Of a stretch of DNA of 64,000 nt, positions 31,710 to 64,000 are shown one piece after another. The position numbers were made by a program, and so were the translations under genes. Numbering within the stretch: the stretch's first letter is position 1; the number at the start of each line of letters is the position of its first letter. The notes beneath the pieces are model-generated. The model was not told the DNA's origin. It saw only the letters and a program-made list of their open reading frames with translations, and searched no databases. The stretch lies in the IMG/VR virus record IMGVR_UViG_3300031963_000004, positions 62,001 through 126,000 of that record; one strand, given 5' to 3'.

Positions 31710-31942
31710 TCGTACTTTAACTTATAATATGTAAATTGCTCATCAGTCATCGTAGCTTCAATTGTATATTCCCAACCCCACGATATTGGTCTTGTACCTC
31801 TATGCCAAGTAGGGTCAATAGTATTTTCCATAACCCATTTACCTTTTTCTGATTGCTCAAATTCTACTAAATTTTGTGCAGCCCATAAATCAGGATCTTC
31901 AACGTCTCCCATATGAAATTGATGAACTACTACTTTTTTCAT
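31706..31942 (-). CDS. Hypothetical protein
   Basis: 78 aa; 4-bp overlaps on both sides. Confidence 0.6.
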   Translation of the reverse strand: MKKVVVHQFHMGDVEDPDLWAAQNLVEFEQSEKGKWVMENTIDPTWHRGTRPISWGWEYTIEATMTDEQFTYYKLKYE

Positions 31943-32796
31943 ACTGCCATTGTAGCTTTAATAGGCTCATGACATTGATAATCTTCTAAATGAATATCTT
32001 CCATTGTAAATTGTTCAATATCTTTAATATCAAAATTCAAGAATAATCTTGGCAAAGGATATTCTTCTCTTGAAAGCTGTTCTTTTACCTGTTCAACATG
32101 ATCCTTATAAATGTGTGTGTCACCCATACTAATTATTAGTTCACCTACTTTATATTTGCAAACGTGAGCAATCATGTGTGTAAGTAACGCATAACTTGCT
32201 ATGTTAAAAGGTAATCCTAAAAATACATCAACACTACGTTGATACATATGGCAGCTTAATTCATTATTCTTGTTAACGTAAAATTGACTCATTACATGAC
32301 AAGGAGGTAGTGCCATATCTTCTAATTCAGCAACGTTCCATGAACTAAGTATGTGACGCCTGCTATGTGGATCTTCTTTTAATTGAGTTATTAAAGTTTG
32401 TAATTGGTCTATAGCAACACGCACCGGTGGCTTATCAGTTTTTACCCAATCACGCCATTGTACTCCATAGATACGACCAAGATCGCCTTCAAACTTTGCT
32501 TTATGTTTCCAATACGGTGCAAGTGCGTTCCATGTCCATATTGTTACTGCACCATCACGTGTACCGTGTGTTATTTCTGCAAGTCTACGCTCGTCACTTG
32601 AGCCTTCAATGAACCAAAGTAGTTCACCGACGCAAGCTTTCCAAGCCAACTTTTTAGTTGTGATGGCTGGAAAGCCCCTACGCAAATCAAAGCGAATACT
32701 ACGTCCAAACACACTATAAGTGCCAACACCAGTTCTATCATCTCTGACCTCTCCGTTCTCTAAAATATCTTCTAATAAGTCATGATACTGTTTCAT
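31939..32796 (-). CDS. thyA: Thymidylate synthase ThyA
   Basis: DRTGVGT, ELLWFI, MALPPCH, YQRSVDVFLGLPFN, DTHIY. Confidence 0.97.
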   Translation of the reverse strand: MKQYHDLLEDILENGEVRDDRTGVGTYSVFGRSIRFDLRRGFPAITTKKLAWKACVGELLWFIEGSSDERRLAEITHGTRDGAVTIWTWNALAPYWKHKAKFEGDLGRIYGVQWRDWVKTDKPPVRVAIDQLQTLITQLKEDPHSRRHILSSWNVAELEDMALPPCHVMSQFYVNKNNELSCHMYQRSVDVFLGLPFNIASYALLTHMIAHVCKYKVGELIISMGDTHIYKDHVEQVKEQLSREEYPLPRLFLNFDIKDIEQFTMEDIHLEDYQCHEPIKATMAV

Positions 32797-46524: not shown

Positions 46525-46527
46525 TAT

Positions 46528-49500
46528 ATGGCAAGATTCGGTTCTACTGCGAGTACGTTTGGTTTAACTTTTTCAGGTAGTTTTACACCAACCTCGACTA
46601 TAACTCCTTCAGCTTCATCAGTCACAGAAAATAGTTCAGTAACTTTTACAATAACAAGCAATTTAATAAGTAAGACAATTAATTGGCGCATAGTTCATAG
46701 TAATACTACCAACGCTGATTTTTTAAACTCCATTGGATCTGGTACAGTTACTACAAATGGTTCAGGGGGAGCATCATTAGTTATAACACCTATTAATGAT
46801 TTACTCTTTCATGCTGCTCCAAAATCTTTCACAATTGTTTTAAGTTTTGAAAGCAAAGATATATCTACCAGTTCAAGCGTTACTATCATTGATGCTGCTA
46901 CTGTATCATTTAGTAGTCCACCCTCAAGTATTAATGAGGGAGTCACAACTACATTTAATGTTACTACGACTAGCCTCTCTAATACAACACTATATTGGAG
47001 TATAGATTTATCTGGTGGTATTACTGCAGGTGATTTTTCCGCCACTTCAGGTCCTTTTTCAATAACAAGTGGTTCAGGATCCTTCAGTATCACCACAACT
47101 CCTGATATGACAACAGAGGGAGGAGAAGCATTTGTATTAAGTATTAGAACTGGTAGCGTTACTGGTACTGTAAGAGCGCAAACTACTGTAAGTATTGCGG
47201 ACACAAGTCTTACAAGAACATATGCATTTGGTACTATACCAACATCTATTAACGAAGGTAATACAGGTATATTTAATGTTAATACTACAAATATACCTAA
47301 CAGTCCAACTACAACATTATACTGGACCATAGTTAATACTTCTACAACTAATCTAGATTTTTCAGCAACATCAGGTTTTTTCTCTATAACGAATAACGCA
47401 GGATCGTTTTCTATAACACCTACACTTGATATGACCAAAACCGGTGTTGAAAGTACAGAATCATTTTATGTGCAAATAAGAACAGATAGTACATCAGGTC
47501 CTGTTGTAGCCACAAGTAACAACGTGAATGTCGTTGATATGGTACCAACTTATTCCGTTGGTCCAAATGTAACTTCTGTAAATGAAGGTGGCACTGTTAC
47601 ATGGACAGTTACAACTAACCATGTTGTTAACGGTACTGTTTTATATTGGAGTGTCAACTTAGCGTTTGGTATGAGTGTTAGTGATTTATTAGACAATGCT
47701 AATGCGACAGGTTCTGTAACTATCAATGACAATATAGGCACTTTCACAACTACTTTAAGAAATGACCAATCCACAGAAGGATCAGAAACTCTTTATGTTT
47801 GGTTATGGACTGATTCGAACAAAACTCAAGGACAGCATGTCGCCCAAAGTATTAACGTTACAGTTACCGACTCAAGTACTGCAATTGTACCATTTGTAGA
47901 AGTTGGTTACACAATCTATCAAGATGTGACTAGTGCGACCTTTACGCAACCTGCAGGTTCTTCATCAGCATTTATCATTGCACAAGGAGGCGGCGGAGGT
48001 GGTGCAGGTGGTTACGCAGTTCCAAACTCTTACGCTGCTAGCGGTGGTGCAGGAGGCGGCGGCTCTGTGGTTAGAGCCTTAGTTAATTTACCTGCAGGTT
48101 CAACACTATCAGTATTTCCAGGAACAGGCGGTGCAGGTAGTTTAGCAGGTAGTACTACTGACGGCGCAGCCGGTGCACCATCCAGTTTAACTGGCACTGG
48201 TATTAGTATATACGCAGCTCCGGGCGGCGGTGGAAAAAATTATAATTTACGAACAGGTGGTGATGGTGGACAATCAATAACAAGTTCTGCAAGTGGAGCC
48301 AATGTAATTGATTTTGGCATAGTATATGGCAGTTCTGGTACTAGCGGCGTATATACTACGGGTTCATTTACTGCGAGTATTGATGGTGGTAGTAGTGCGA
48401 CTACTGCAGGTTCTGGAGTTTATTACCCAATTAGTGGTGGATTAGGAGGACCAGGAGGCGTTACCAATAGCAGTATGTTTGATGCTAAAAACGGAACTTA
48501 TGGTGACGGAGGAGGTGGCGGTGCTGCATACAAAACAACAGGCTCATCTTCATACGGTAGAGGAGGCAATGGAGGTAAAGGAACAGTTATTGTAGTATAT
48601 GGTAACGGTAATGGATTTACAGGAAACCAACCGCAATACACTATAAGTCCAAGTGCAACAACAATCAGTGAAGGACAATCAGTAGTGTTTACTGTAAATA
48701 CTACCAACGTAGCTAATGGCACAGTGTTGTATTGGGATAATGACGTAAACATGCCACATCCCTTCTTCACAACGTCTTTAGATCACACTCAATCAGGTAG
48801 TGTAAGTATAAGCAGTAACACTGCAAGTTTTACGTTAAGTATACCATATGACTCTGTTGATGATAACAATGATAGAATAAGTATAAGGCTATTTAGAGAT
48901 AGCGGAAGAAAATACATGGTTGCAAGGGCAAGTATTGTAACTATAGAAAATTTTGCACAATTAGCTCTAACTCAAAACTGGACTTCAATAACATTCAATC
49001 AAGGCACTGCTGTTACGAATGGACGACCATTTACACCAAGCGGAGGTAGCGGTTCTTATTGGATACTTCCAGACAGTTCCGCTGAAACTGCACTTTCAAA
49101 TGTAGGTTTATCGTGGGATCCTCTCACAGGAACAATAACAGGTACTCCTAATGCTGGCTTAACTGCCTTAACTTTTAATGTACTTTATACTTCAAGTACA
49201 AGTACCGCTAGTCAACAATTATCGAGAACAATAACAGTTAGTGTGGCTTCTGTAGGAGAGTTTACATTGACAGGCAGTCTTAATGACGTTACACAATCTT
49301 GGACAGTACCTGCAGGTGTTACTTCAATATCAATGGTTTGTATAGGCGGAGGGGGCGGGGCAGGCGCATTTGGTTTGCAATATAATACAGCAGGTACACT
49401 ACTTCGCAGATACGGAGGAGGTGCAGGTGGGGGTGGTGCTTTATCATATAGAAATAACTATTCAGTATCACCGGGTTCAACTTTAACTGTAACTGCTGGA

Positions 49501-50193
49501 AAATATGGATCTGGTGCAATAAGTTCTAGGTCAGGCGGCGGTACTGCTGTACCTGATAGATTGGGACCAGATGGTACTGCCGGCGGCACTAGTCAGATTG
49601 TCCTAGGAGCTACTACACTAGTTTCAGCGGGGGGAGGCGGTGCAGGACTCAGAAGCAACTTTTCAGTTAACACATCAGTAACAGGTGGAAGTGGTGGCAC
49701 AAGAAGTGCGATAACAGGTACAGCAGGTGGAAGTGGTGGTAAGGGAGGGAACGGCATTGGTGCTTCATCAGGCACAACTACAGGAATTAGCGGTGGAGAT
49801 GGCGGTGGTGGTGGTGCCGGTGGTTATAGTGGCAATGGTGGTGGAGGGGGAAATGGTAGCACATCTACAACGCAAGCCTCAGGTACAGCAGGCGCAGGCG
49901 GTGGCGGAGGAGGTGGCGCCGGTGGTAGAAATGCTACACCAAGTACAGGTGTTACGACAACTGGAGGCGGAGCTGGCGGAGGTGTTGGTGCATTAGGTAC
50001 TGGTACAAATGGCACTGCCGGGACTTCAACTACACCTAACGGCGGTGGCGGATCGGGAGGTGCTTCAGGTGGACCAAGTGGTGTTGGTGGCAACTATGGT
50101 GCAGGTGGTAACCAAGGTGGTAGAGGTGGACCAGGTTATGTAAGAATTATTTGGCCGGGAACTACAAGAACTTTCCCTAGTGCAGCAACTTAA
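46528..50193 (+). CDS. Virion adhesin/fibre with Calx-beta-like Ig repeats and Gly-rich domains (1221 aa)
   Basis: Five S(V/I)xEG/EN...F(T/N)V modules; two GGGGGG-rich domains, the second starting SWTVPAGVTSISMVCIGGGG. Confidence 0.8.
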   Translation: MARFGSTASTFGLTFSGSFTPTSTITPSASSVTENSSVTFTITSNLISKTINWRIVHSNTTNADFLNSIGSGTVTTNGSGGASLVITPINDLLFHAAPKSFTIVLSFESKDISTSSSVTIIDAATVSFSSPPSSINEGVTTTFNVTTTSLSNTTLYWSIDLSGGITAGDFSATSGPFSITSGSGSFSITTTPDMTTEGGEAFVLSIRTGSVTGTVRAQTTVSIADTSLTRTYAFGTIPTSINEGNTGIFNVNTTNIPNSPTTTLYWTIVNTSTTNLDFSATSGFFSITNNAGSFSITPTLDMTKTGVESTESFYVQIRTDSTSGPVVATSNNVNVVDMVPTYSVGPNVTSVNEGGTVTWTVTTNHVVNGTVLYWSVNLAFGMSVSDLLDNANATGSVTINDNIGTFTTTLRNDQSTEGSETLYVWLWTDSNKTQGQHVAQSINVTVTDSSTAIVPFVEVGYTIYQDVTSATFTQPAGSSSAFIIAQGGGGGGAGGYAVPNSYAASGGAGGGGSVVRALVNLPAGSTLSVFPGTGGAGSLAGSTTDGAAGAPSSLTGTGISIYAAPGGGGKNYNLRTGGDGGQSITSSASGANVIDFGIVYGSSGTSGVYTTGSFTASIDGGSSATTAGSGVYYPISGGLGGPGGVTNSSMFDAKNGTYGDGGGGGAAYKTTGSSSYGRGGNGGKGTVIVVYGNGNGFTGNQPQYTISPSATTISEGQSVVFTVNTTNVANGTVLYWDNDVNMPHPFFTTSLDHTQSGSVSISSNTASFTLSIPYDSVDDNNDRISIRLFRDSGRKYMVARASIVTIENFAQLALTQNWTSITFNQGTAVTNGRPFTPSGGSGSYWILPDSSAETALSNVGLSWDPLTGTITGTPNAGLTALTFNVLYTSSTSTASQQLSRTITVSVASVGEFTLTGSLNDVTQSWTVPAGVTSISMVCIGGGGGAGAFGLQYNTAGTLLRRYGGGAGGGGALSYRNNYSVSPGSTLTVTAGKYGSGAISSRSGGGTAVPDRLGPDGTAGGTSQIVLGATTLVSAGGGGAGLRSNFSVNTSVTGGSGGTRSAITGTAGGSGGKGGNGIGASSGTTTGISGGDGGGGGAGGYSGNGGGGGNGSTSTTQASGTAGAGGGGGGGAGGRNATPSTGVTTTGGGAGGGVGALGTGTNGTAGTSTTPNGGGGSGGASGGPSGVGGNYGAGGNQGGRGGPGYVRIIWPGTTRTFPSAAT

Positions 50194-50486: not shown

Positions 50487-50546
50487 ACTATAACTATTAA
50501 ATATTTATTGCAAATGAATATTTTTTATTTAAAGGAGACACACAGT

Positions 50547-51572
50547 ATGAAAAAGGTATTTGCATTATTAACCTTAATGGTTTCACAAGTCGCAATGTCA
50601 GCAGAATTTACTGGGGCAGGTGCGACTTTTCCATATCCGATTTACGCAAAGTGGGCAGAAGCTTATAAAGCACAAACTGGGATAGGATTGAATTATCAGA
50701 GCATTGGTAGTGGTGGCGGTATTCGTCAAATCAAAGCAAAAACAGTTGACTTTGGTGCAAGTGATATGCCATTAAAACCAGAAGAACTTGAGAAAGAAGG
50801 ACTAGTGCAATTTCCAGCTATCATAGGTGGAGTTGTTCCAGTTGTAAACTTAGATGGTATACAAGGTGGTCAACTAAAATTAACAAGTGATGTTATTGCT
50901 AACATACATTTAGGTAAAATTACTAAATGGAATGACAAAGCTATTGCCGAAATAAATCCTGGAGTTACATTACCTGCATTAAATATCACAGTCGTACATC
51001 GTGCAGATGGATCAGGTACAACATTTATTTGGACAAATTATCTAAGCAAAGCAAACGCAGACTTTCAAAAAACAGTAGGCGAGGGCACAGCAGTTAAATG
51101 GCCAGTAGGTGTAGGTGGTAAAGGTAATGAAGGTGTAGCAGCGCAAGTTCAGCGCATCAAAGGTGCTTTTGGTTATGTAGAATATGCATATGCTAAAAGA
51201 AACAAAATCGCACATACGCAATTAAAAAATCGTGATGGCAATTTTATTCAACCAGATGACAGTACATTCAAAGCAGCAACAGCTAATGCAGACTGGAATA
51301 ATGCTCCTGGCATGTACTTATTATTAACTTGGCAAACAGGCAAAGACGCATGGCCTGCAACTGGCGCAAGTTTTATTCTAATGCACAAACAACAAGCAGA
51401 TGCATTAACTGGTCGTGCTATTTTGAAATTCTTTGATTGGAGTTACAAAAATGGTAGCAAGATGAGTGAAGAATTAGAATATGTTCACTTACCACAGTCA
51501 GTTATTAAGTTGATACAAGAAAACTGGCGCCGTGACTTCAAAGGTCCAGATGGTAACGCAATTTGGAAATAA
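50547..51572 (+). CDS. pstS: Phosphate ABC transporter substrate-binding protein PstS
   Basis: Signal peptide, GAGATFPYP, GSGGG, DFGASD, RADGSGTT, GKGNEGV; AGGAG SD before ATG at 50547. Confidence 0.96.
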   Translation: MKKVFALLTLMVSQVAMSAEFTGAGATFPYPIYAKWAEAYKAQTGIGLNYQSIGSGGGIRQIKAKTVDFGASDMPLKPEELEKEGLVQFPAIIGGVVPVVNLDGIQGGQLKLTSDVIANIHLGKITKWNDKAIAEINPGVTLPALNITVVHRADGSGTTFIWTNYLSKANADFQKTVGEGTAVKWPVGVGGKGNEGVAAQVQRIKGAFGYVEYAYAKRNKIAHTQLKNRDGNFIQPDDSTFKAATANADWNNAPGMYLLLTWQTGKDAWPATGASFILMHKQQADALTGRAILKFFDWSYKNGSKMSEELEYVHLPQSVIKLIQENWRRDFKGPDGNAIWK

Positions 51573-54819: not shown

Positions 54820-54834
54820 ATAATTATTTATAAA

Positions 54835-57800
54835 TTACGGGTATAAATTATCGTAGTACTCTTTGATCCAAGCCCAGTCATAGGTTAATCTTAGTTTCTC
54901 AAAGTCACCCTTAACACTTTCATAATACTTGACCGCTTCGTTTGCACCCTTCAAGCAATATTCGCTGTATTCTCCGGTAGCCACGGTAAGCCAAATGTCA
55001 AGTCTTTCTTTGTTTTCTTCAGATCCTATAGTTTCTACGCTATGCTTAAGTTTGACTACTTCTCTAAAAGCAGTTCTCCAAGTATCCCATTTGCTTGTAT
55101 TAAACCGACTAATCCCTGAATTAATATTAACAACTTCGTGTTCACTGTCAAGTGTAAAGTCTAGACCCTTAACAATAGTATTAAGTGTCAACTTTTTATT
55201 GTTGGCGACAATAGCTTGGTGACCATATTCTAATCCATTTAATGGGTTAGTAGCAGTAAAGATATAATGCTTTGGTATCTGTAATCTATCTGGTTGCCAA
55301 TCAAAATTAAAATCTTCATTGACTTTAAGCTTTGCGTTCACTAAGAAATACCAAGGTGTGTTTGACATTCTAGCTGCTTCATGTTGACTAGCTACACGAC
55401 CTTTAATACCATCAACACCTACTACTATGTTAGGCAAGTCTTTTGCTATATTCAACAGATGTTCGTAGTTTTCTTCCGCGCAAGCTTCACCATTACTAAA
55501 GAAAACAATATCTAATGGTTTGCTTTGCGATAATTTTTTACTTGTGATTATATATGGATAATCGTAAATTTCTTTCTTAACAAACTTACTTGTTTCTTTG
55601 GGAGCAATGATTCTACTTGCACCTGTACTTGTGATTATAACAGTTTTATCTTCTGCTTTCCATAATGACATTGTATCAATATCTTCATGCCTCATGTTTT
55701 TATTATCTGCTGTAATAAGAACTTGATATGGAAAGTCTACTTGATTGTGAATGCTATTAACCAAAGTATCATCATCTACTATAGTAACAGGAGCAGGCAA
55801 TCTTGGAACTGATTGCTCACCTTTAAAATTTATTTCAGGGTAATCATCTAACTTTTTAATAATTGGTAAAAACATTCTTAATTCATTCACATTTACTAAG
55901 AATGTGTCACCGAACTTTTGATTATTACTAGCAAACACATACATCTGTTCGCTTGTACCTGTATCAAACGTCTGAGTAAAATCAAAATTACTATAATCAC
56001 AAATTGAACTACATATCCAAATATAATGCTCGTTCTTAGTAGGCAATGATTCTACAATAGAAAAGAACGTCTGATAGTAATCTGTGTCGTGTGGGATAAC
56101 TGTGATATTTCTGTTTGGAACTCTGTCTTTTAAAGTTTCTAAACAAGTGTGTTGATTGCCAAAATCAATTAGATAAATGTCATGCAATGATTCTTTTATC
56201 TTAGCCTCTTTGTTAACAAAGTTTAGCATAGACATATCTTCAAGTAGTTTATCTTTTTTATATTCAATAAGATATGAATCCTTATTTACAAGATAAGTGT
56301 AACCCCACTGAGTCCATTGGGTCTTAAATACGTGAAGCATTCTTGTTTGCCAAATACTAGGATAGTAGTTAAAATCAAAATCAGCATAATCAATCTCGCT
56401 ACTTAAAACCCAAAACAGTTTAGTTTTAGACTTGTTGGCACAACTAGCAATTACTTCAGCCCAGCCGTTAGCGAATCTTGTTTTCTTTATTTGAGGAAAC
56501 TTTTCTTGTAGTATTTCAAAATTTTCTAAACTATCCTTATTCATTCTATCAATATAAAACATATCTAGTTTAGAATCTACATCAATTTCTAGTTCAGAAA
56601 CATAATTATACTGTATTTTTTCTTTACAGTGTTTTTCAATAACAAAGTACGTCTGTAGGTCTAGGCTCTCTTTGTTTCCAAAAACATGCACATATGGGGA
56701 TTCATAATCTTCGGGTTCCCAACTAAAATCAAACTTGTCGTAATTTAATTCAGCGTTTAGGGCCCAAAACATTTCATCAGGATGTTGTTTAATTAAATCC
56801 TCAAGTGTAGTTTCAATATAATATTTTTTGATGTTTTTGTTAATTAATTTTACAATAGGATTAGCAACAAACTTTGTCTGCGTTGCACCTTCTATTTTAT
56901 ATTCTAACACATATTTTAAATTATCTCTATACTCATTTTTGACTCCAAATTTGTAGATATAGGGAGGGTCTCTATCATCATGATGCCAACTATAATCGAA
57001 TAAAATTTCATCAGTAGTTAACTTTGTAAATCTTGATTCATCCGGCAATTTGATTGCTGCTTGAAATGTTTGATATTTAATACCTTCATAATCAGCAACC
57101 ACATAAACAGGACCACCCGTATTTTGCCATTGTGTGCCAAACATATGTAAGTAAGGTTCGTCTTTTCTTGGTTCCCAACTGAAATCAAACTTACTTACAT
57201 CTAGACCTTTAGGCACTGCCCAAAAATTATCTTCAGGGAATTCATTTATTAAATCATCTAAATCGGTTTCAATATAATGAATTACCGTATCAGATGATTT
57301 TTTTGCTATCTGAAATGTTTGATATTTTACTCCCATATAATTAGGAACGATAAGTGCAGGTCCTGCATCTTGATTCCATTGCGTACCAAACTGATGTAAA
57401 TACGGAGGTTCTCCTATAGGAGGTTCCCAACTATAATCAAAATCTTCATCATTTAAATTTTCAGGTACTACCCAAAAAGTTTCAGTTCTATGTTCAGATA
57501 TTATTTTTTGTAACGTATTAATTTTATCTAATGTATATTTTTTAAGTGGTATTTTAGCTGCTAAAGGATAATCATGATACTTGTAACCTTTATTAGAAGG
57601 TACTACATATGCAGGTCCATCTGATGTATTAAATCTCGTACCGAATTGATGAATATAAGGAGGGTCATATCTGTTAGGTACCCACGTAAAATCAAATGAT
57701 TCTTTGTCTATATTGTTAGGTACTGCCCAAAATGCATCACTAGGATATTCGTAAATTAAATCCTCAACTGTCGTAGTATCATCTATTTCATAAATAGGAA

Positions 57801-58503
57801 CCATACACTTTCGTAATGCTTTTTGACTTTGCTGATACTTAGTACCTTGATTATTCGGTACTACATAGCAAGGTCCTCCATCAGAGTCCCATTGTGTTCC
57901 AAATACATGAACATATGGAGGTTCATGTTTATTCGGCATCCAACCAAAGTCAAAGTTTGATACATCTACGTTAACAGGCACAGCCCAAAATTCTGTATCA
58001 AAGTATAAGCTAACTAACTCTTTGAATTCTTTTTGAGAGGAAAATGTAAGGATAGGAGGAATTTTATATTTTAAGTCTATTGAAATATACTTTTGTTTTT
58101 CAGCGCCCTCTACATGATATTCTGCAACAATTTTTTCTTCTTCATCTATTGAACCAATAAAAATATACACGAAGGGTTCTTCAGTGTCATCAGGATGCCA
58201 GCTAAAGTCAAAATCTAATTTATCATTTTTAATAAAAAAGTTTTCTTTATGTTGCAAATGTCTTACTGTTTGAAAGTCATGGTACTTAACACCTTCACTT
58301 TCGGGAATTACAAACTTAGGTCCGCCAGTTTTCTGCCATTGTGTTCCAAACTGATGCGTATAAGGTCTGTCATAGTAACTAGGTCTCCATGAAAAGTCAA
58401 AGCCCTCAGTATCAACATTATCGGGGATAACCCAATAACCTTGTTCCCATAACTTAATTCTTTCTTCTATATCGTAATCTTTTTGTTCTACCATCATGAA
58501 CAC
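54835..58503 (-). CDS. 1222-aa protein with about 11 FDF(S)WxP repeats and a C-terminal glycosyltransferase-like domain
   Basis: Repeats read from the translation; the C-terminal ~230 aa are homologous to the 63173..64000 protein. Confidence 0.75.
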   Translation of the reverse strand: MFMMVEQKDYDIEERIKLWEQGYWVIPDNVDTEGFDFSWRPSYYDRPYTHQFGTQWQKTGGPKFVIPESEGVKYHDFQTVRHLQHKENFFIKNDKLDFDFSWHPDDTEEPFVYIFIGSIDEEEKIVAEYHVEGAEKQKYISIDLKYKIPPILTFSSQKEFKELVSLYFDTEFWAVPVNVDVSNFDFGWMPNKHEPPYVHVFGTQWDSDGGPCYVVPNNQGTKYQQSQKALRKCMVPIYEIDDTTTVEDLIYEYPSDAFWAVPNNIDKESFDFTWVPNRYDPPYIHQFGTRFNTSDGPAYVVPSNKGYKYHDYPLAAKIPLKKYTLDKINTLQKIISEHRTETFWVVPENLNDEDFDYSWEPPIGEPPYLHQFGTQWNQDAGPALIVPNYMGVKYQTFQIAKKSSDTVIHYIETDLDDLINEFPEDNFWAVPKGLDVSKFDFSWEPRKDEPYLHMFGTQWQNTGGPVYVVADYEGIKYQTFQAAIKLPDESRFTKLTTDEILFDYSWHHDDRDPPYIYKFGVKNEYRDNLKYVLEYKIEGATQTKFVANPIVKLINKNIKKYYIETTLEDLIKQHPDEMFWALNAELNYDKFDFSWEPEDYESPYVHVFGNKESLDLQTYFVIEKHCKEKIQYNYVSELEIDVDSKLDMFYIDRMNKDSLENFEILQEKFPQIKKTRFANGWAEVIASCANKSKTKLFWVLSSEIDYADFDFNYYPSIWQTRMLHVFKTQWTQWGYTYLVNKDSYLIEYKKDKLLEDMSMLNFVNKEAKIKESLHDIYLIDFGNQHTCLETLKDRVPNRNITVIPHDTDYYQTFFSIVESLPTKNEHYIWICSSICDYSNFDFTQTFDTGTSEQMYVFASNNQKFGDTFLVNVNELRMFLPIIKKLDDYPEINFKGEQSVPRLPAPVTIVDDDTLVNSIHNQVDFPYQVLITADNKNMRHEDIDTMSLWKAEDKTVIITSTGASRIIAPKETSKFVKKEIYDYPYIITSKKLSQSKPLDIVFFSNGEACAEENYEHLLNIAKDLPNIVVGVDGIKGRVASQHEAARMSNTPWYFLVNAKLKVNEDFNFDWQPDRLQIPKHYIFTATNPLNGLEYGHQAIVANNKKLTLNTIVKGLDFTLDSEHEVVNINSGISRFNTSKWDTWRTAFREVVKLKHSVETIGSEENKERLDIWLTVATGEYSEYCLKGANEAVKYYESVKGDFEKLRLTYDWAWIKEYYDNLYP

Positions 58504-59984
58504 ACCTTTATTTTATATTTGCTTTGAAATCTATCTGCATCTGCTCTATCATTTACCATTGGTTCACCTTTGATATTAAGTGAGGTGTTTAATAACATAG
58601 GACAACCTGTATGATAATGCCAAAATTCTAATAACTCTCTAATACCTGATCCGTCTTTAGGTACAGTCTGTACTCTACTTGTATTATCATGGTGTACGAT
58701 AGCAGGAAACTTTTCTGGATATTTACAGTTAGCAACTATTTGCATGTATCTACTATCTACCCAACATTTAGGCATATCAAAATATTCATTTGCATATTCT
58801 TCTAATATTACGGGTGCAAATGGTCTAAACTTTTGCCTACGCTTAATTTCATTTACTTTATCTTTTATTTCATTCCCTCTAGGATCAGCTAATAAACTGC
58901 GATTGCCTAATGCCCTAGGTCCAAACTCAGCACGACCTGAAGCTACACCCACTATCTTGTTTTTCTTAAGTTCATCATATAAATCTACAGTAGGATAATG
59001 CCCTTTTATGTTATGACCAAGATAAGCATTCTTCCAATTTAAATTACGCCCATAACCTAGTGCTGCTGCTCCTAAACTGCTACCTGCATCACCTGGATTA
59101 GGCATAATCCAAACTTTGTCAAAATATTTACCTAGTATTCTGTTAGCCAAACAATTTAATGCAACGCCACCACCGTATACTAAGTTATTACTATAACCTT
59201 TTTCTTTGCACAGTGTTAACGCTACTTCTAACATTTCTTCTAAAAACTTCTGCGCACTAGCTGCTATATCCATTTCATTAGCATGATGCAAGAAGCTATG
59301 GCGTTCGTCTATACCAGTATGTAAGTTTTCTTTGAATTCAAAATTGTTTTTATCGTATACAAATGATTCAAACATTTGTTCGGTGTATGTAGGGTTGCCA
59401 TAAGCAGCCATACCCATCATAATGTATTCTTCATCCATCGGATGTAAACCTACATGTTGTGTCATAGCACTGTAGAATAAGCCTAAGCTATTTGGATATT
59501 TTTTTGTATACAGATTTTTATATATAGCTTTACCATTACGGTCATAATCTGCATCCCAAATTGATATTGTGTCAAATTCTCCGATAGCATCTATTATTAA
59601 TACCGTAGCATTATTGAACGGACTTGTTTGAAAACCTGCTGCTGCATGGCTTAAATGATGATTGTGATAGTGTAACTTTTTCTTACCTAATCTTTTTTGA
59701 ACTTCTTTACCTATTAATCTTGTTTTACTAAAAACAGAGAAATCTAGTGGTTCACCTGATCGCAATGACCTTAAGAATCGTAAATAAGGTCTTTCGTAAT
59801 AATGTAAATCATGCCCTGAGGAAGAATGTTTTAGTACGTCCGTAATTAAATGAACGTTTAAGTTTGGGTCATTTTTAATTTTGCTATATCTTTCGCTGTG
59901 ACCAGCGAAAAGAATATTACCACGGTCGTCTATTAAACTGACCGCTGCATCATGAAATCCGTTGCTTATGCCTATAAAATTCAT
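58494..59984 (-). CDS. Carbamoyltransferase, NodU/CmcH family
   Basis: FHDAAV, SERYS, HHLSHAA, EFGPRALGNRSLL, FRPFAP, LNTSLN. Confidence 0.95.
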   Translation of the reverse strand: MNFIGISNGFHDAAVSLIDDRGNILFAGHSERYSKIKNDPNLNVHLITDVLKHSSSGHDLHYYERPYLRFLRSLRSGEPLDFSVFSKTRLIGKEVQKRLGKKKLHYHNHHLSHAAAGFQTSPFNNATVLIIDAIGEFDTISIWDADYDRNGKAIYKNLYTKKYPNSLGLFYSAMTQHVGLHPMDEEYIMMGMAAYGNPTYTEQMFESFVYDKNNFEFKENLHTGIDERHSFLHHANEMDIAASAQKFLEEMLEVALTLCKEKGYSNNLVYGGGVALNCLANRILGKYFDKVWIMPNPGDAGSSLGAAALGYGRNLNWKNAYLGHNIKGHYPTVDLYDELKKNKIVGVASGRAEFGPRALGNRSLLADPRGNEIKDKVNEIKRRQKFRPFAPVILEEYANEYFDMPKCWVDSRYMQIVANCKYPEKFPAIVHHDNTSRVQTVPKDGSGIRELLEFWHYHTGCPMLLNTSLNIKGEPMVNDRADADRFQSKYKIKVCS

Positions 59985-60082
59985 TTGTAAATAAATGGAT
60001 CACGTTTTCTTGCTTCTCTTAATTTTTTTCTGTGTAATAATTCTCTGCGAATTTTATTTAAAATCATTCTAATAAAATACAT
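59981..60082 (-). CDS. 33-aa basic peptide coupled to the carbamoyltransferase (not in the ORF track)
   Basis: MYFIRMILNKIRRELLHRKKLREARKRDPFIYK; its TGA overlaps the carbamoyltransferase ATG. Confidence 0.65.
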   Translation of the reverse strand: MYFIRMILNKIRRELLHRKKLREARKRDPFIYK

Positions 60083-60086
60083 AATT

Positions 60087-60902
60087 TTACCTTAGATGCT
60101 CAACTTTCCAGTCTTGATATGGCAATAACCCTGCATTGACATAATCCATATATTGTTGAATAGTGTTAACAGGTTTTAATAAATTTTTCTTAAATTTATC
60201 CATACTTATATGATCTACTTTTTTAGTTTTTACTGCTTCTACTAACATGTTAGACAAAATTTCAAGATTCGGAATACTCATATGATTATCCCTTAAATCA
60301 ATTTGTGTTTTCTTTATCCAATTATAGTAAGCAGTTTCTGGTTTATCTGAAATTAATTCTTCATTGCATATTGTAAGCAATTCAATGTTTGGTCGTAAAA
60401 AATTATCTAGTTCTTTTGCAAAAGAAACATTTACAGTGATATTACTATTCATGAGAAAGATAAACGTAACCTTAGGTAGTTTTTCTGCGATATTTCTTAC
60501 TAAATGAGTCATTGCCTCATGAGTCACAGTTTCTATATACCCATCTTGATTAGCAACAAACCATTCTAAATATTTTTTATTTTCTCTGTACCATTCATGT
60601 TTTGGTAACTTATAATCTGAGACTGGATGTAAATATACCGCTGCCGTTTCAGGTCTTTCTTTTTGAAATTCTAATTTTAATCTTCCCGGAGTACTTCTGC
60701 AAAATACAACCACATCACCGTCTACAAAACGTTCATAATCTTCAAGTAAGCATTTTAAGGCATGCTCAGTACTACCCCCAGTCATTGCTTTGTTTTTAAT
60801 TTTACATCCTAACTTAATTGCAAATCTACTGGGCCAATCTAAATTTTGTATGGGAGTAGAAGCAGAAGCAAAACTATCTCCATAAACATATACAGTATTC
60901 AT
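60087..60902 (-). CDS. SGNH/GDSL-like protein
   Basis: N-terminal VYGDSF, NKAMTGGS, late DNH. Confidence 0.65.
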   Translation of the reverse strand: MNTVYVYGDSFASASTPIQNLDWPSRFAIKLGCKIKNKAMTGGSTEHALKCLLEDYERFVDGDVVVFCRSTPGRLKLEFQKERPETAAVYLHPVSDYKLPKHEWYRENKKYLEWFVANQDGYIETVTHEAMTHLVRNIAEKLPKVTFIFLMNSNITVNVSFAKELDNFLRPNIELLTICNEELISDKPETAYYNWIKKTQIDLRDNHMSIPNLEILSNMLVEAVKTKKVDHISMDKFKKNLLKPVNTIQQYMDYVNAGLLPYQDWKVEHLR

Positions 60903-60903
60903 T

Positions 60904-61845
60904 TCAAATCCATTTACTTATATCAACATCACTAGAACAATGACAAATAGCATTTTTAGTGCAAACTACAGGCTTAGTTGGCCATATAATATCATCTGGT
61001 TTATTGATATTGCCTATAACTCCACCTACCCCGCAATTACCAAGATTAATATCGCCATTCCAATACACAAACATTGCCTTTATACCTATATCACAAGTAT
61101 AGTTGTAAAAGTTTGTCATTCCAGCATTTATGTAATCATTAGCTACTGGCATATAATGTTCTGTGCCATCATCAAAATAATATGTGTTATAATTAATTTG
61201 AGGATCTCTGATAAGTCGTTCTAGCTTTTCTTTTCTGTCTGTATACCCATTATTAGAAAAGAATTCTAATTGGTCTTTGTTATAAAGGTGCGCTTCTCTA
61301 TCTTTTCCAATCCAATCAGTTATTCTTACTGGCTCAACATTTAAACTAGGTATATCTAAAATCTTTTTATATAATTCCATTGACTGATCCCAGTATTTAG
61401 GATGCATCATTACTCTAACAGTTACATTTGTAATTTTACTACTAACTGTTACTTTTTCAATGAAGTCAGGATCAGGGAATTCAGGATGATATGAGAAACA
61501 AATGTAACTCATGTAGTATGCGATTTCTTCCCAATATCTTACAGTTCTTGCTGCGTTACTAGTCATTCCTATGCTATGATTTTTTTCATAGAGCATTTGA
61601 ACTAATTCTTTAAAGAAAGGACTTAAACTAGGTTCGCCACCTGTGATAGTTACATGAATTTTAGGATGTCTATCAAACAACATATGAAAGAATTTTTTAG
61701 CATTCTCCCATTCATAATGATGATTCTTACCCTCATGTAAATCGCTTGGGCAATAACTACACTTGTTTGTACAGATATTGTTTATTACCCAAGTTAAATG
61801 AAACGGTGCGTAATTAGGTTGTTCTATCCTTATTATCTTTTTCAT
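60904..61845 (-). CDS. Radical SAM protein
   Basis: CTNKCSYC, TGGEP, C-terminal Cys cluster (C...GNC...CTKNAICHC). Confidence 0.9.
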   Translation of the reverse strand: MKKIIRIEQPNYAPFHLTWVINNICTNKCSYCPSDLHEGKNHHYEWENAKKFFHMLFDRHPKIHVTITGGEPSLSPFFKELVQMLYEKNHSIGMTSNAARTVRYWEEIAYYMSYICFSYHPEFPDPDFIEKVTVSSKITNVTVRVMMHPKYWDQSMELYKKILDIPSLNVEPVRITDWIGKDREAHLYNKDQLEFFSNNGYTDRKEKLERLIRDPQINYNTYYFDDGTEHYMPVANDYINAGMTNFYNYTCDIGIKAMFVYWNGDINLGNCGVGGVIGNINKPDDIIWPTKPVVCTKNAICHCSSDVDISKWI

Positions 61846-63173
61846 CTATATTTTCCAGGATACATTGTACGCAAGCACTCTAGCTCAGGTATTGTATCAA
61901 ATATACTTTCATCTCTTACTTGATCCACTTGATAGCTTGTTCTTAAAAACTTAATAGCATCTTTAGGATTATGAGGCTTTTTCAACTCATGTATTATTTG
62001 TGCAAAATGAGGTCCTATATCTGTTGAATACTTTTTATCGTATTCTCCGATATAACCATTGATTCTTTCAATGATAGAATCTTTAAACTCATCTGGTAAA
62101 ATATGAACGTGATAATAACTAGGTTGTTCAAGTAGATTAATGAAGAAGTTTTTATACCAAAGCTTTTCTTTAATAACACCCAACTCTAGCAATTTATCAA
62201 TTATCTCAGGTAGTCTGAATACGTTCATAGCACCAATAGTTAATCCAGGTCTGACTATAAGATTATCCAATTTAGTCATTGCTATAAGATTTTCTTCTAC
62301 TTTAGGCCATATAGTACCGCTGCGAATTAACTCTGCTCTTGCACCTATCTCATCAATACTAGGCCAAATTTCTAACTTACCGTAATCCCATTGACTCCAG
62401 TAATCTAACACATTCTTTTTACCATATTCTAATACTGAACAGTTTGTATTATATGAAAGCTTAACGTCGAAACGTTTACCTTCAACTAACATATCAAGTA
62501 TCTGCCAATGCTCAGGCATTAACAATGGTTCACCACCTGCAAAGTAAATCTTCTCTACATGTTGAACCTGATCCTGTAAGAAATCATAGTTAGTTTGTTG
62601 ACCGACTGCATCAATATTCCAAACTTTTTCCTGATCAGTGTAGCCTAATTTCTTTGCATCAGGTACCCATGCTGAACTATATCTTGGCCCACAGCTACGA
62701 CATTTAAAATTACACAGATTACTAAATCTAAAGTCCCAATACTTTAATTTCATTTCATTACAAGTACCATCTTTTTCTGTAATGACTGGAATCTTTTTTA
62801 ATACTGATTTGAATTCACGGTTGTGATATATTCTACCACTTTCACCTGTAACTTTTTCTTTGTCGTAACACTTTCTACATATCTCAGGCTCCTCGTTGTT
62901 CATCATCTGTACACGGAGATTTTTCATATTGTCGCTGTTCCAAATCTGATCAATTGTTTGATGAGTTAGGTCGCCAGCAAAATAATTATATGTAGAAGTT
63001 AAGCAGCAAGGAACTACTTTACCGTTTGGTTCAAAGTTTAAGTGCATCCACGGGACTGCACATATTTTATTGTCTGTCTCTTTCATTAGCTTTCTGTATC
63101 TCCGTTTAGCATATTTGTACAACTGTGTGTTTAATAAAAATCTTTTAATCTTAACTTTAAGTGGAACTGACAT
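61842..63173 (-). CDS. Radical SAM protein with an N-terminal SPASM/twitch-like domain
   Basis: CAVPW...VPCC...CRKC precedes CNFKCRSC and AGGEP. Confidence 0.9.
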   Translation of the reverse strand: MSVPLKVKIKRFLLNTQLYKYAKRRYRKLMKETDNKICAVPWMHLNFEPNGKVVPCCLTSTYNYFAGDLTHQTIDQIWNSDNMKNLRVQMMNNEEPEICRKCYDKEKVTGESGRIYHNREFKSVLKKIPVITEKDGTCNEMKLKYWDFRFSNLCNFKCRSCGPRYSSAWVPDAKKLGYTDQEKVWNIDAVGQQTNYDFLQDQVQHVEKIYFAGGEPLLMPEHWQILDMLVEGKRFDVKLSYNTNCSVLEYGKKNVLDYWSQWDYGKLEIWPSIDEIGARAELIRSGTIWPKVEENLIAMTKLDNLIVRPGLTIGAMNVFRLPEIIDKLLELGVIKEKLWYKNFFINLLEQPSYYHVHILPDEFKDSIIERINGYIGEYDKKYSTDIGPHFAQIIHELKKPHNPKDAIKFLRTSYQVDQVRDESIFDTIPELECLRTMYPGKYR

Positions 63174-64000
63174 TACCAGCCTTCAATTTTCCGTATAATG
63201 TCCATTTCTCTGACTAAGGGACCTAAATTATATTTATCGGCATTATAGTGTCGTTTGAAGAACTTCGATTGTTCTGCACTTAACGCACACATAGGTAACC
63301 CTAACTTGTCAGACAATAACTCGGCTAATTGTTTAGGTTCATTATGTTCAAATGTGTCCCATAACTTTACTAGTTCATCAAAATCTTGAACTTTGTTATA
63401 GTCCCACTCAGTTAGCATAGTCAAATATGTTCCTAATCTTGCACCATAGATAGCCCATTCACCGTTCTCAACATCCATACCCACATTCTGCCATATAGTA
63501 AGATTATTAAGATTTCTACTCGCTACACTTTCTTTAAATGAACTAATACTTGGTTTATTGCCCACTACTAGGCACATCTTTACACCTTCTCTAAATCCTG
63601 CACGCCAAGCTTGAAATGGTGTATAGTTAGGATACGTGGTTGAATAACAATCATACATGCTCCAGTATATATTGTCACTACTATCTAAACAAAAATCAAC
63701 CGTCGTCGCCGCACCGCCGTCACTATTTTCGTGTGTTCGCATATTCATGACGTAAGTTTTAGTCCAACTACTCATGCCACCATTACCGTAACGTAAACCG
63801 TTAACAGCATTAATTGCTCTCCAACGATATTGTGCGATTTGATAGGTAGGGTGTTTATCAGTGAAATCTAAATCTAAATCAAAGAATGACGGATCAGGCA
63901 TATTGTCACCGTCGATTAATATAAATCTTTCTGTGTCGCTTGCCTCTGCTGCTGCTTTGTGTGCGGCATCACTTCCCTTAACTCCATCTACTCTTTTAGC
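63173..64000 (-). CDS. Glycosyltransferase-like (GT-A type) protein, partial (starts beyond the right edge)
   Basis: Frame is open to the edge: AKRVDGVKGSDAAHKAAA...FILIDGDN (DxD), NGLRYGNGG, AWRAGFREGVKM. Confidence 0.7.
   Translation of the reverse strand, partial: AKRVDGVKGSDAAHKAAAEASDTERFILIDGDNMPDPSFFDLDLDFTDKHPTYQIAQYRWRAINAVNGLRYGNGGMSSWTKTYVMNMRTHENSDGGAATTVDFCLDSSDNIYWSMYDCYSTTYPNYTPFQAWRAGFREGVKMCLVVGNKPSISSFKESVASRNLNNLTIWQNVGMDVENGEWAIYGARLGTYLTMLTEWDYNKVQDFDELVKLWDTFEHNEPKQLAELLSDKLGLPMCALSAEQSKFFKRHYNADKYNLGPLVREMDIIRKIEGW

Follow-up and report, generated by a model that had tools for sequence, protein, structure and literature searches.

What does a tightly packed run of seven genes in an uncultured freshwater jumbo phage do, and on what does it act? 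To address this question, we examined a window of 64,000 nucleotides (positions 62,001 to 126,000 of IMG/VR record IMGVR_UViG_3300031963_000004), together with the sequence just beyond it where the first gene continues. The original prediction, made from sequence alone, described a coupled operon for a glycosyltransferase (GT)-like protein, a radical SAM enzyme with a leading SPASM domain, a second radical SAM enzyme, an SGNH protein, a peptide, a NodU-type carbamoyltransferase, and a giant with GT repeats. We found that this observation is correct: all seven open reading frames (ORFs) are present in that order and abut or overlap. The record is a 223-kb phage fragment that is 63% complete by CheckV, implying a genome of about 350 kb; thus, the absence of genes elsewhere is weak evidence. 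The NDP-sugar epimerase and the methyltransferase that had been pointed out elsewhere in the window were confirmed by PHROGs, but nothing links them to the operon.

Table. Coordinates of the features discussed, given as positions in the window.
Feature	Position	Strand	Length	Junction or extent
Predicted GT-A "anchor"	63173-64000	-	310 aa	3' 828 nt in window; cut at 64000; full gene to window-equivalent 64105 (L001:9173-10105)
N-terminal-twitch radical SAM enzyme	61842-63173	-	443 aa	1-nt overlap
Second radical SAM enzyme	60904-61845	-	313 aa	4-nt overlap
Predicted SGNH-fold protein	60087-60902	-	271 aa	
Microprotein	59981-60082	-	33 aa	TGA overlaps carbamoyltransferase ATG (ATGA)
O-carbamoyltransferase family protein	58494-59984	-	496 aa	
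Giant with repeats	54835-58503	-	1,222 aa	10-nt overlap
NDP-sugar epimerase	30744-31709			
Methyltransferase	27376-28071			

To assign identities to these genes, we first searched their products against Pfam, NCBIfam, and PHROGs, which confirmed both radical SAM enzymes and the carbamoyltransferase. The first radical SAM enzyme is a bona fide N_Twi_rSAM (NF033640; 356.5 bits against a cutoff of 170), with Pfam SPASM at residues 38 to 103 ahead of Radical_SAM at residues 150 to 249. C38, C99, and C102 (plus C57), consistent with an auxiliary Fe-S cluster, and C154/C158/C161 of the CX3CX2C motif are invariant in 27 paralogues. We could find no characterized member of this family. The second radical SAM enzyme (PF04055, 46.7 bits) has an invariant C25/C29/C32 and a C-terminal cysteine cluster of its own, in which C251, C271, C295, C301, and C303 are conserved in 89% of 28 relatives. 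The carbamoyltransferase has both domains of the NodU/CmcH/TobZ superfamily (Carbam_trans_N, Kae1-like, 133 bits; Carbam_trans_C, YrdC-like, 170 bits; phrog_1601, 3e-99), as well as invariant H11, H109, H110, H113, and D132. Its closest solved structures are the O-carbamoyltransferases NovN (1.4e-50), GdmN, and TobZ, with matches ranging from 1e-37 to 1e-50. It is not a NodU orthologue, however, as it scored 144 bits against an equivalog cutoff of 1000.

The remaining large proteins had no profile hits and were confirmed only at the level of fold or motif; the GT-like and SGNH-like proteins are predicted to fold as GT-A and SGNH proteins with the catalytic motifs kept. The AF2 model of the GT-like protein (pLDDT 91.7) is a soluble GT-A/NDP-sugar-transferase fold with a conserved DxD (D65, D67). 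Its best Foldseek match is the PBCV-1 A64R capsid glycosyltransferase, and all top VIA hits (Z up to 8.2) are GT-A enzymes or nucleotidyltransferases. D65, D67, H125, E126, R168, R172, and E173 are at least 90% conserved. This fold match is moderate (Z about 8, TM 0.3 to 0.4, sequence identity 11 to 14%) and equally covers sugar nucleotidyltransferases. The SGNH-like protein was modeled with a pLDDT of 84.8, and its top 50 Foldseek matches are almost all SGNH/GDSL enzymes (1yzf, TesA, rhamnogalacturonan acetylesterase, and OatA-C); its Atlas neighbors are DUF6071 and Lipase_GDSL. G8-D9-S10, G42, S44, D202, R204, and H207 are invariant in 16 homologues, and a search of 5.8 billion proteins returned only 15 homologues. 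We refer to it as an esterase/acyltransferase-like protein.

The giant had been read as an array of GT repeats, but it is not a working GT array. The protein is soluble and has eight strong repeats of ~85 aa (FWAVPxNxD…FDFSWxP…PPYxHxFGTQW, residues 22 to 657), with weaker copies at residues 697 to 753 and 829 to 870. BLASTP against the anchor (2e-10) and an anchor-family HMM identified a full GT-A-like domain paralogous to the anchor at residues 995 to 1219 (iE 1.3e-24) and a partial one at residues 644 to 701 (2.5e-7), while the repeat HMM gave 11 domains, one of them inside the C-terminal GT-A-like domain. The DxD is lost in every copy, where the corresponding positions read VPxN, SSE, or NAK. 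It is therefore a pseudo-glycosyltransferase, and we infer that it may serve as a noncatalytic scaffold or binding array.

We next sought to determine whether this arrangement is conserved. The anchor has more than 8,000 metagenomic homologues at 72 to 90% identity (1,192 clusters at 50% identity), and the only cultured relative is Ralstonia phage RsoM2USA. The upstream genes and the anchor are syntenic in all 80 related loci. In RsoM2USA, ORF353-348 correspond to g266, g267, a small gene, the anchor, an N-Twi radical SAM enzyme, and a GT-A-like paralogue, and they lie next to the sheath and structural proteins. g266 and g267 are paralogues (hhalign, 99.3%) with a weak glycogenin-like N terminus. 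In the phage studied here, the upstream neighbors are tail-fiber-like, with Gly_rich_2 (phrog_863), the Peptidase_G2 IMC domain, and a 5,246-aa giant. In contrast, everything downstream of the anchor is a hypervariable cassette. The N-Twi family has 189 copies in 73 of 81 related loci, amplified into tandem arrays of two to seven paralogues; the second radical SAM family is present in 30 related loci, typically right after an N-Twi gene; and the family of the giant occurs in only 8 of 81. The exact seven-gene order occurs only in this phage. Nonconservation of gene order had been named beforehand as grounds for rejecting the original prediction, and it applies to the seven-gene order, though not to the module as a whole.

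Sister cassettes at the same position in the 80 related phages carry genes for NDP-sugar epimerase/dehydratase, nucleotidyltransferase plus kinase, cupin, FkbM methyltransferase, B12-rSAM, and DUF6071/SGNH proteins. Together with the predicted GT-A fold of the anchor and the relationship of the carbamoyltransferase to NovN, GdmN, and TobZ, this supports a role in sugar or glycan tailoring. An alternative is that the module modifies a protein or peptide directly, with the radical SAM enzymes acting like RiPP maturases (epimerization, cross-links, or C-methylation) on a tail-fiber or other virion protein, or on the microprotein as a precursor, and with the carbamoyltransferase capping a side chain. 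SPASM/twitch radical SAM enzymes are the classical peptide maturases, tandem arrays of up to seven N-Twi paralogues, plus B12-rSAM, occur in relatives, the cassette lies next to tail-fiber genes, and a small conserved ORF lies inside the operon. In addition, some related cassettes carry an Asp/Arg hydroxylase-family gene (Asp_Arg_Hydrox), which could point to a protein or lipid substrate. However, the microprotein tracks the carbamoyltransferase and is absent from the more than 70 loci with N-Twi arrays that lack a carbamoyltransferase, the sister cassettes are rich in nucleotide-sugar enzymes, and the conserved core is made of GT-A-fold proteins. The twitch enzyme BtrN acts on a sugar-like substrate, although the weak hit to BtrN obtained here is uninformative. 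We consider direct protein modification unlikely.

The peptide is not a stray ORF but the most conserved accessory of the carbamoyltransferase. This previously unnoticed microprotein (MYFIRMILNKIRRELLHRKKLREARKRDPFIYK; net charge +9) has invariant K26, D28, I31, and Y32 and belongs to no Pfam family. Homologues ending in …DP(F/Y)IY(K) lie next to the carbamoyltransferase in 15 of 19 lineages of its subclade, including RsoM2USA (in an unannotated gap), marine virus AG-345-D19, Agromyces, and Streptomyces. This subclade is at least 43% identical among phages, Actinomycetota, and Proteobacteria, and the microprotein is absent next to distant carbamoyltransferases, including the characterized enzymes and about 70 ordinary bacterial homologues. 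We are highly confident that it is a real conserved gene. It often sits beside an SGNH gene, although this adjacency holds in only about half of the microprotein lineages.

One possibility is that this ORF is instead a cis-acting leader (a regulatory upstream ORF or ribosome-arrest peptide) whose C terminus, …RKRDPFIYK-stop, would stall or couple ribosomes to control translation of the carbamoyltransferase, perhaps in response to a metabolite, while the rest of the cassette would still tailor a glycan. Its stop codon lies -3 to +9 nt from the carbamoyltransferase start in most lineages, conservation is concentrated at the extreme C terminus, and the peptide is strongly basic, as many nascent-chain effectors are. 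Prediction of a complex gave no support for binding, although an outcome of this kind from this method is not evidence. In RsoM2USA, however, the ORF is separated from the carbamoyltransferase by another gene and precedes the SGNH-like gp200; in four of the loci (L099 to L102), it lies 708 nt upstream with another gene between; in Streptomyces, it lies downstream of the carbamoyltransferase; and in locus L094, it follows an SGNH gene with no carbamoyltransferase at all. The N-terminal amphipathic pattern is also conserved. Thus, a leader function appears improbable, and we favor a role in trans.

By analogy, this role may resemble the acyl-tyrosine shuttles of DltX-DltB-DltD and PatA-PatB, in which the published motif is FXYXXF and NgPatA ends in FIYANF (PMC12148441). 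The microprotein ends in FIYK and thus has an invariant Tyr in an F-x-Y motif at its extreme C terminus, encoded beside an SGNH-fold protein with conserved Ser and His. HypF, similarly, carbamoylates the C-terminal Cys of HypE. In the favored version, the tyrosine would take the carbamoyl group and the SGNH serine would pass it to the glycan. This relay is doubtful, however, because the motif lacks the last three residues, and there is no MBOAT, no carrier protein, and no membrane to cross, so that a shuttle is not obviously needed; TobZ-type enzymes carbamoylate sugars directly. The candidate loading enzyme would also be a soluble carbamoyl-adenylate-forming enzyme, and the group moved would be carbamoyl rather than acyl.

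The original prediction proposed carbamoylated, radical-modified glycans on the virion, the host surface, or DNA, and we find this interpretation partly supported. No module protein has a membrane segment (maximum KD19, 1.11), and no flippase or initiating phosphoglycosyl transferase (Bac_transf) was found, which disfavors the host surface. DNA is also disfavored: the thymidylate synthase homologue scores as a canonical ThyA (358.8 bits), no hydroxymethylase or DNA-modification neighbor was seen, and the module is embedded in tail genes in two distant phage lineages. In favor of such targets, phage glycosyltransferases often act on DNA, cyanophage "LPS genes" have been proposed to act on the host, the microprotein is very basic, the record is incomplete, and the anchor is far more conserved than its structural neighbors (40 to 65%), as expected of an enzyme with an invariant substrate such as DNA. 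The hypervariability of the cassette fits surface diversification better, and we regard DNA hypermodification or envelope remodeling as the least likely alternative. A virion protein is the best remaining option, but this is tentative and slightly less likely than not on present evidence; no acceptor was identified.

Comparison with other viral systems revealed both parallels and differences. As in the glycosylation of virions by PBCV-1 A64R and of mycobacteriophage capsids and tail tubes, the GT-A enzymes are virus encoded, soluble, and located among structural genes; however, this module adds radical SAM enzymes, an SGNH protein, and a carbamoyltransferase, it is hypervariable, and no glycosylated virion protein is known for this clade. 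Hypervariable "LPS/glycan gene" islands of T4-like cyanophages and pelagiphages carry Nol-like carbamoyltransferase, methyltransferase, NDP-sugar dehydrogenase or epimerase, and radical SAM genes. Those carbamoyltransferases are only 26 to 32% identical and lack the microprotein, and the islands are not anchored to the GT-A gene, which has no homologue in any cultured phage except RsoM2USA.

Collectively, these data suggest, with a probability of about 0.5, that the seven genes are one version of a hypervariable, entirely cytoplasmic glycan-tailoring cassette. The cassette would hang on a conserved glycosylation core (two paralogous GT8-like proteins, a small protein, the GT-A anchor, and an N-Twi radical SAM enzyme) that lies among the tail-fiber and baseplate genes of a very large clade of uncultured freshwater jumbo phages related to RsoM2USA. 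What the analysis shows is the family membership of the radical SAM enzymes and the carbamoyltransferase and the linkage of the microprotein to the latter; substrates, reactions, the acceptor, and the roles of the microprotein and the giant are inferred. In this view, the conserved GT-A enzymes would put a sugar on a conserved acceptor, most likely a tail or fiber protein assembled in the cytoplasm, and the two auxiliary-cluster radical SAM enzymes would act on the sugar or its nucleotide-activated precursor by oxidation, epimerization, dehydration, or C-methylation. The TobZ/NovN-type enzyme would then make carbamoyl-AMP from carbamoyl phosphate and ATP and O-carbamoylate a hydroxyl, with the microprotein working in trans with it and, where present, with the SGNH protein. 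Variation of the cassette between phages would diversify the surface chemistry of the virion.

To assess the gene run, we first mapped its open reading frames (ORFs) and the surrounding features. The window is bases 62001-126000 of a single 223,151-bp IMG/VR virus record with a G+C content of 36.5 %, classed as linear and 63 % complete by CheckV, so the real genome is probably about 350 kb. A terminase, virion proteins, and a PstS-like gene are in the window, and no cultured phage matched at the DNA level. The run sits at the 3' end of a 42-kb minus-strand block of very large structural genes. We found that seven minus-strand ORFs abut or overlap as the original prediction had described, and this observation is therefore confirmed. 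Elsewhere, two very large plus-strand ORFs (2166 and 1221 aa) interrupt the minus-strand blocks, and one 2-kb stretch has a G+C content of 0.46 against about 0.36 elsewhere. The PstS-like phosphate-binding protein gene (phrog_5385, 1e-64) is consistent with a phage of phosphate-poor waters, as is a PBP_like_2 gene that follows the cassette in the related locus L004. Scans for transcription signals allowed no inference on timing. The T4-type late promoter word TATAAATA occurs 2 times against 10.6 expected, and scans for sigma-70 promoters and terminators were at chance level. One of the two TATAAATA words lies immediately after the stop codon of the last gene, but because the count is below chance, we attach no meaning to it.

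Positions of the seven genes and of other features discussed in the text (window coordinates unless another record or locus is named).
Feature	Coordinates	Strand	Junction with the next gene
310-aa predicted GT-A protein, the anchor (cut by the window edge at 64000)	63173-64105	-	1-nt overlap
443-aa radical SAM protein	61842-63173	-	4-nt overlap
313-aa radical SAM protein	60904-61845	-	1-nt gap
271-aa SGNH-like protein	60087-60902	-	4-nt gap
33-codon ORF (microprotein)	59981-60082	-	ATGA overlap
496-aa carbamoyltransferase	58494-59984	-	10-nt overlap
1222-aa giant	54835-58503	-	end of the run
TATAAATA word	54825-54832	-	
Thymidylate synthase	31939-32796	-	
NDP-sugar epimerase-like gene	30744-31709	-	
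PstS-like gene	50508-51572	+	
Two very large ORFs	40024-50193	+	
Stretch of raised G+C	48001-50000		
Two paralogous ~266-aa proteins (just outside the window)	64375-65975 window-equivalent; L001:10375-11975		
Microprotein homologue of RsoM2USA	L002:13892-14002; about 125891-126001 of the RsoM2USA record	-	
Tandem N-terminal-twitch radical SAM paralogues of related locus L050	L050:10900-20900		
Radical SAM cluster of Vibrio phage K566 (L003)	161548-168284 of the phage record		

We next sought to identify the product of each gene. The carbamoyltransferase assignment is secure. Both domains of the NodU/CmcH/TobZ O-carbamoyltransferase superfamily, Carbam_trans_N (Kae1/ASKHA-like) and Carbam_trans_C (YrdC-like), scored above the Pfam cut-offs (133.3 and 169.9 bits against 24 and 27), phrog_1601 matched at 3e-99, and the nearest solved proteins are the O-carbamoyltransferases NovN, GdmN, and TobZ (1e-37 to 1e-50). 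H11, H109, H110, H113, and D132 are invariant in six divergent sequences, and by analogy with the family they correspond to the metal-site residues of the N-domain (HHxxH, HD). The original prediction had called this enzyme NodU-type; it is a superfamily member but not a NodU orthologue, since it scored 144.4 bits against the NF041651 equivalog cut-off of 1000. The 443-aa protein is a full member of the N-terminal-twitch radical SAM family N_Twi_rSAM (NF033640; 356.5 bits against a curated cut-off of 170). Its SPASM domain (residues 38 to 103) precedes the Radical_SAM domain (residues 150 to 249), and four N-terminal cysteines, among them C38, C99, and C102, and the CX3CX2C motif (C154, C158, and C161) are invariant across 27 paralogues. 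The 313-aa protein is also a radical SAM enzyme (PF04055, 46.7 bits against 29.5), in which C25, C29, and C32 are invariant in 28 relatives. Five further C-terminal cysteines are conserved in 89 % of relatives, although no Pfam or NCBIfam SPASM model matched this region.

The SGNH-like protein, the anchor, and the giant were placed at the level of fold or motif only. Searches of Pfam, PHROGs, and NCBIfam, even at E = 10, found nothing for the SGNH-like protein, the anchor, the giant, the microprotein, or the two paralogous ~266-aa proteins encoded upstream of the anchor (g266 and g267). In the 271-aa protein, the block I G8-D9-S10, the block II G42, and S44 are invariant in 16 homologues. D202 and H207 are also invariant, but their spacing is D-x4-H rather than the canonical block V DxxH, and of the invariant asparagines N108, N118, and N167, none was assigned to the GxND of block III. 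The AF2 model (pLDDT 84.8) retrieved almost only SGNH/GDSL enzymes among the top 50 Foldseek PDB matches (E from 5e-4), though with TM scores of only 0.3 to 0.5, and the Atlas TM is 0.50 to 0.63 to Lipase_GDSL/DUF6071 clusters. These data support an SGNH alpha/beta fold.

The 310-aa anchor was modeled at a pLDDT of 91.7, and residues 1 to 160 are predicted to form a GT-A/NDP-sugar-transferase fold. The best Foldseek match is the PBCV-1 capsid glycosyltransferase A64R, all top matches are GT-A enzymes or related nucleotidyltransferases with VIA Z values up to 8.2, and a DxD at D65/D67 is at least 90 % conserved. These fold scores are moderate, however, and do not separate glycosyltransferases from sugar nucleotidyltransferases, since IspD/HddC-type nucleotidyltransferases scored at equal Z. 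The anchor did not fall into any described GT family by Pfam, NCBIfam, PHROG, or PDB sequence search; a PDB search with its profile gave only GmaR at E 0.17, which is a lead only.

The 1222-aa giant carries eight strong 85-residue repeats and three weaker ones, together with a partial and a complete copy of the GT-A-like domain of the anchor. One repeat-HMM hit lies inside the complete copy, just after the strand that should carry the DxD. Thus, the repeat looks like a piece of that domain, although a direct profile-profile comparison of the repeat with the anchor family was not significant (hhalign E 0.094), and the link rests instead on the HMM hits inside the giant. The DxD positions read VPxN, SSE, or NAK in every copy; thus, we treat the giant as a putative non-catalytic pseudo-GT array rather than the glycosyltransferase repeat protein that had been predicted. 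No protein of the module, including the microprotein, has a hydrophobic segment that reaches a membrane-helix score.

To place the operon in context, we compared it with related loci. The anchor has more than 8000 relatives at 72-90 % identity, on contigs of up to about 360 kb, which form 1192 clusters at 50 % identity. Among cultured phages, only the Ralstonia jumbo phage RsoM2USA has it, at 40 % identity. In 80 IMG/VR loci, eight genes, the last of which is the anchor, are always present in the same order: a 205-aa protein, a 404-aa protein with a Peptidase_G2 intramolecular-chaperone domain, a 629-aa Gly_rich_2 tail-fibre-like protein, a 115-aa protein, two paralogous ~266-aa proteins (hhalign 99.3 %), a 100-aa protein, and the anchor. 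The two ~266-aa proteins have a DxD-like motif and a weak, non-significant glycogenin-like (GT8) N-terminus (a PDB search with the g267 profile gave glycogenin at E 0.25-1, a lead only). They are conserved in all relatives and in RsoM2USA and are probably further glycosyltransferases of the core. RsoM2USA keeps the same core next to its sheath and structural genes, as ORF353, ORF352, ORF351, ORF350 (the anchor), ORF349 (an N-Twi radical SAM), and ORF348 (a GT-A-like paralogue of the C-terminus of the giant).

Downstream of the anchor, the content changes from phage to phage. Among the 81 related loci, N_Twi_rSAM is present as 189 copies in 73 loci, with up to seven in tandem; the 313-aa radical SAM family is found in 30 loci, a 409-aa family without an assigned function in 31, NDP-sugar epimerase/dehydratase in 17, DUF6071 (SGNH-like) in 14, nucleotidyltransferase plus kinase in 12, a shikimate-dehydrogenase-like family in 12, cupin in 11, FkbM methyltransferase in 6, B12-radical SAM in 6, the giant in 8, and the carbamoyltransferase in about 5. 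In locus L050 and in six other related loci (L020, L036, L046, L049, L061, and L065), five to seven N-terminal-twitch paralogues stand in tandem directly behind the anchor, an unusual amplification of an uncharacterized radical SAM family. A separate cluster of four radical SAM genes distantly related to the N-Twi enzyme (20-26 % identity) is present in the 255-kb Vibrio phage K566, with no anchor gene and no carbamoyltransferase. A recurrent alternative cassette was found in L087, L094, and L096, which are metagenomic contigs with homologues of the 271-aa SGNH-like protein. It reads N-Twi rSAM, ~315 aa, rSAM, Asp_Arg_Hydrox, ~460 aa, and SGNH-like, and in L087 it lies among replication genes rather than tail genes. 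Conservation of gene order had been set beforehand as a test of the original prediction, and we found that the exact seven-gene order occurs only in a second sample of the same phage (L005). The operon is therefore one mosaic of a hypervariable cassette attached to a conserved, predicted glycosyltransferase core. The nucleotide-sugar enzymes in sister cassettes are the main support for a sugar substrate. Literature searches for phage radical SAM, carbamoyltransferase, and glycosylation systems or N-terminal twitch enzymes found nothing relevant, and a paper on a "moraphage" could not be tied to this clade.

The 33-codon ORF encodes MYFIRMILNKIRRELLHRKKLREARKRDPFIYK. Homologues of 31 to 41 residues ending in …(K/R)xDP(F/Y)IY(K) lie next to the carbamoyltransferase in every related phage locus but one; in RsoM2USA, marine virus AG-345-D19, a Haliscomenobacter MAG, and an alphaproteobacterial MAG on a 636-kb contig; and in an Agromyces isolate and a Streptomyces isolate. 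In RsoM2USA, the published annotation leaves a 108-nt gap between gp201 and gp200 that encodes a 36-aa homologue (MIQKLVNWLKSFFVKEKTEAEKIRDQIRKQDPFIYK). This phage is the only cultured carrier of both sub-modules, namely, ORF348 to ORF353 and ORF199 to ORF203 plus this unannotated ORF. Overall, the microprotein is present in 15 of 19 lineages in which the carbamoyltransferase is at least 43 % identical to this one (35 % for the truncated copy in related locus L069), and it is absent beside about 70 ordinary bacterial homologues (31-36 % identity) and beside the cyanophage and pelagiphage enzymes. A single-protein query found no close bacterial carbamoyltransferase relatives, whereas an alignment query did. 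The closest "bacterial" hits (50-58 %) lie on MAG contigs, namely, a 5-kb Polynucleobacter contig (L111) and the Haliscomenobacter MAG (L110), the latter of which carries the same rSAM, N-Twi, microprotein, carbamoyltransferase, and SGNH set; these may be mis-binned phage contigs or hints to the host range. K26, D28, I31, and Y32 of the microprotein are invariant. An SGNH-like gene with a block I G(D/C)S is adjacent in about half of these lineages, and in one contig the microprotein follows a homologue of the 271-aa SGNH protein with no carbamoyltransferase present. We also considered whether the microprotein could be a RiPP precursor matured by the radical SAM enzymes. This idea was rejected on co-occurrence, because the microprotein was found only beside carbamoyltransferase genes (and once beside an SGNH gene) and in none of the other N-Twi radical SAM loci.

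In the Dlt and PatAB systems, an invariant tyrosine in a C-terminal FXYXXF motif (FIYANF in Neisseria gonorrhoeae PatA) is acylated and then hands the acyl group to the serine of an SGNH partner, which modifies the polymer (PMC12148441). The phage microprotein ends in F-I-Y-K and often sits beside an SGNH protein with conserved Ser and His. F-I-Y is present in most copies, but the chain ends one to three residues after the tyrosine, so the second half of the motif is missing. HypF, a relative of TobZ-type enzymes, carbamoylates the C-terminal cysteine of HypE, so protein carbamoylation near a C-terminus has precedent in this superfamily. We therefore propose, as an inference, that the carbamoyltransferase loads carbamoyl from carbamoyl-AMP onto Tyr32 and that the SGNH protein delivers it to the glycan. 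We regard this soluble carrier model as possible but unlikely, with a probability of roughly 0.25. The motif is truncated, there is no MBOAT (or AT3) partner and no membrane to cross, TobZ-type enzymes act directly on sugars, and SGNH adjacency is incomplete. Since no module protein has a membrane-helix-grade segment, the module is not a member of the acyl-tyrosine shuttle systems and is only a possible mechanistic analogue. Structure prediction for a complex of the carbamoyltransferase, SGNH protein, and microprotein scored 0.17, below the mark of 0.32, which is not evidence either way. The main alternative is that the ORF is a cis-acting leader or arrest peptide, as suggested by the overlap of its stop codon with the carbamoyltransferase start. 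This alternative is weakened by four lineages in which the ORF is not immediately upstream of the carbamoyltransferase. If the carrier model is true, it would be the first acyl-tyrosine-type shuttle that works without an MBOAT or a membrane, the first protein-borne O-carbamoyl-tyrosine, and a hallmark of a carbamoyltransferase subclade shared by jumbo phages, Actinomycetota, and Proteobacteria. It would sit in a phage module that uses arrays of uncharacterized N-terminal-twitch radical SAM enzymes to diversify virion glycans.

The original prediction was that these genes make carbamoylated, radical-modified glycans on the virion, host surface, or DNA. The absence of membrane segments from the module proteins and of any initiating phosphoglycosyl transferase found in the record argues against lipid-linked host envelope chemistry, although the record is incomplete. 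The thymidylate synthase homologue scores as a canonical ThyA (PF00303, 358.8 bits), and the module lies in tail regions in two distant lineages, which argues against DNA hypermodification of the hydroxymethyl-pyrimidine type. The NDP-sugar epimerase-like gene that the original prediction had mentioned lies next to this thymidylate synthase, and no link to the operon was found. A virion protein is the most economical candidate acceptor, and variation of the cassette would then diversify virion surface chemistry; however, the Asp/Arg-hydroxylase genes in some related cassettes keep a protein- or lipid-directed chemistry open. Collectively, the analysis partly supports the predicted interpretation and refines the gene annotations. 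The gene order, the family and predicted fold assignments, and the linkage of the microprotein to the carbamoyltransferase rest on direct comparison, whereas the transferase activity of the anchor, the lack of catalysis by the giant, the sugar substrate, the carbamoyl relay through Tyr32, and the virion target are inferred. Three features were not anticipated, namely, the conserved anchor with its hypervariable cassette, the amplified N-terminal-twitch radical SAM family, and the carbamoyltransferase-linked microprotein, which may be mechanistically new.

Phage-encoded glycan islands are known but almost never understood. Here, a single predicted GT-A gene that is 72-90 % conserved marks the same island in thousands of uncultured freshwater jumbo-phage contigs, which gives a handle for comparing hundreds of natural cassette variants. 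The island is dominated by a radical SAM family (N_Twi_rSAM) with no known chemistry, amplified up to seven-fold, and is a rich, testable source of new sugar or protein radical chemistry. The microprotein, which is unannotated even in the published RsoM2USA genome, defines a carbamoyltransferase subclade across phages and bacteria, and whether it proves to be a carrier, a partner, or a leader peptide, it changes how these enzymes should be annotated and assayed. If the target is the virion, this would be a large-scale natural example of phages diversifying their own surface chemistry.
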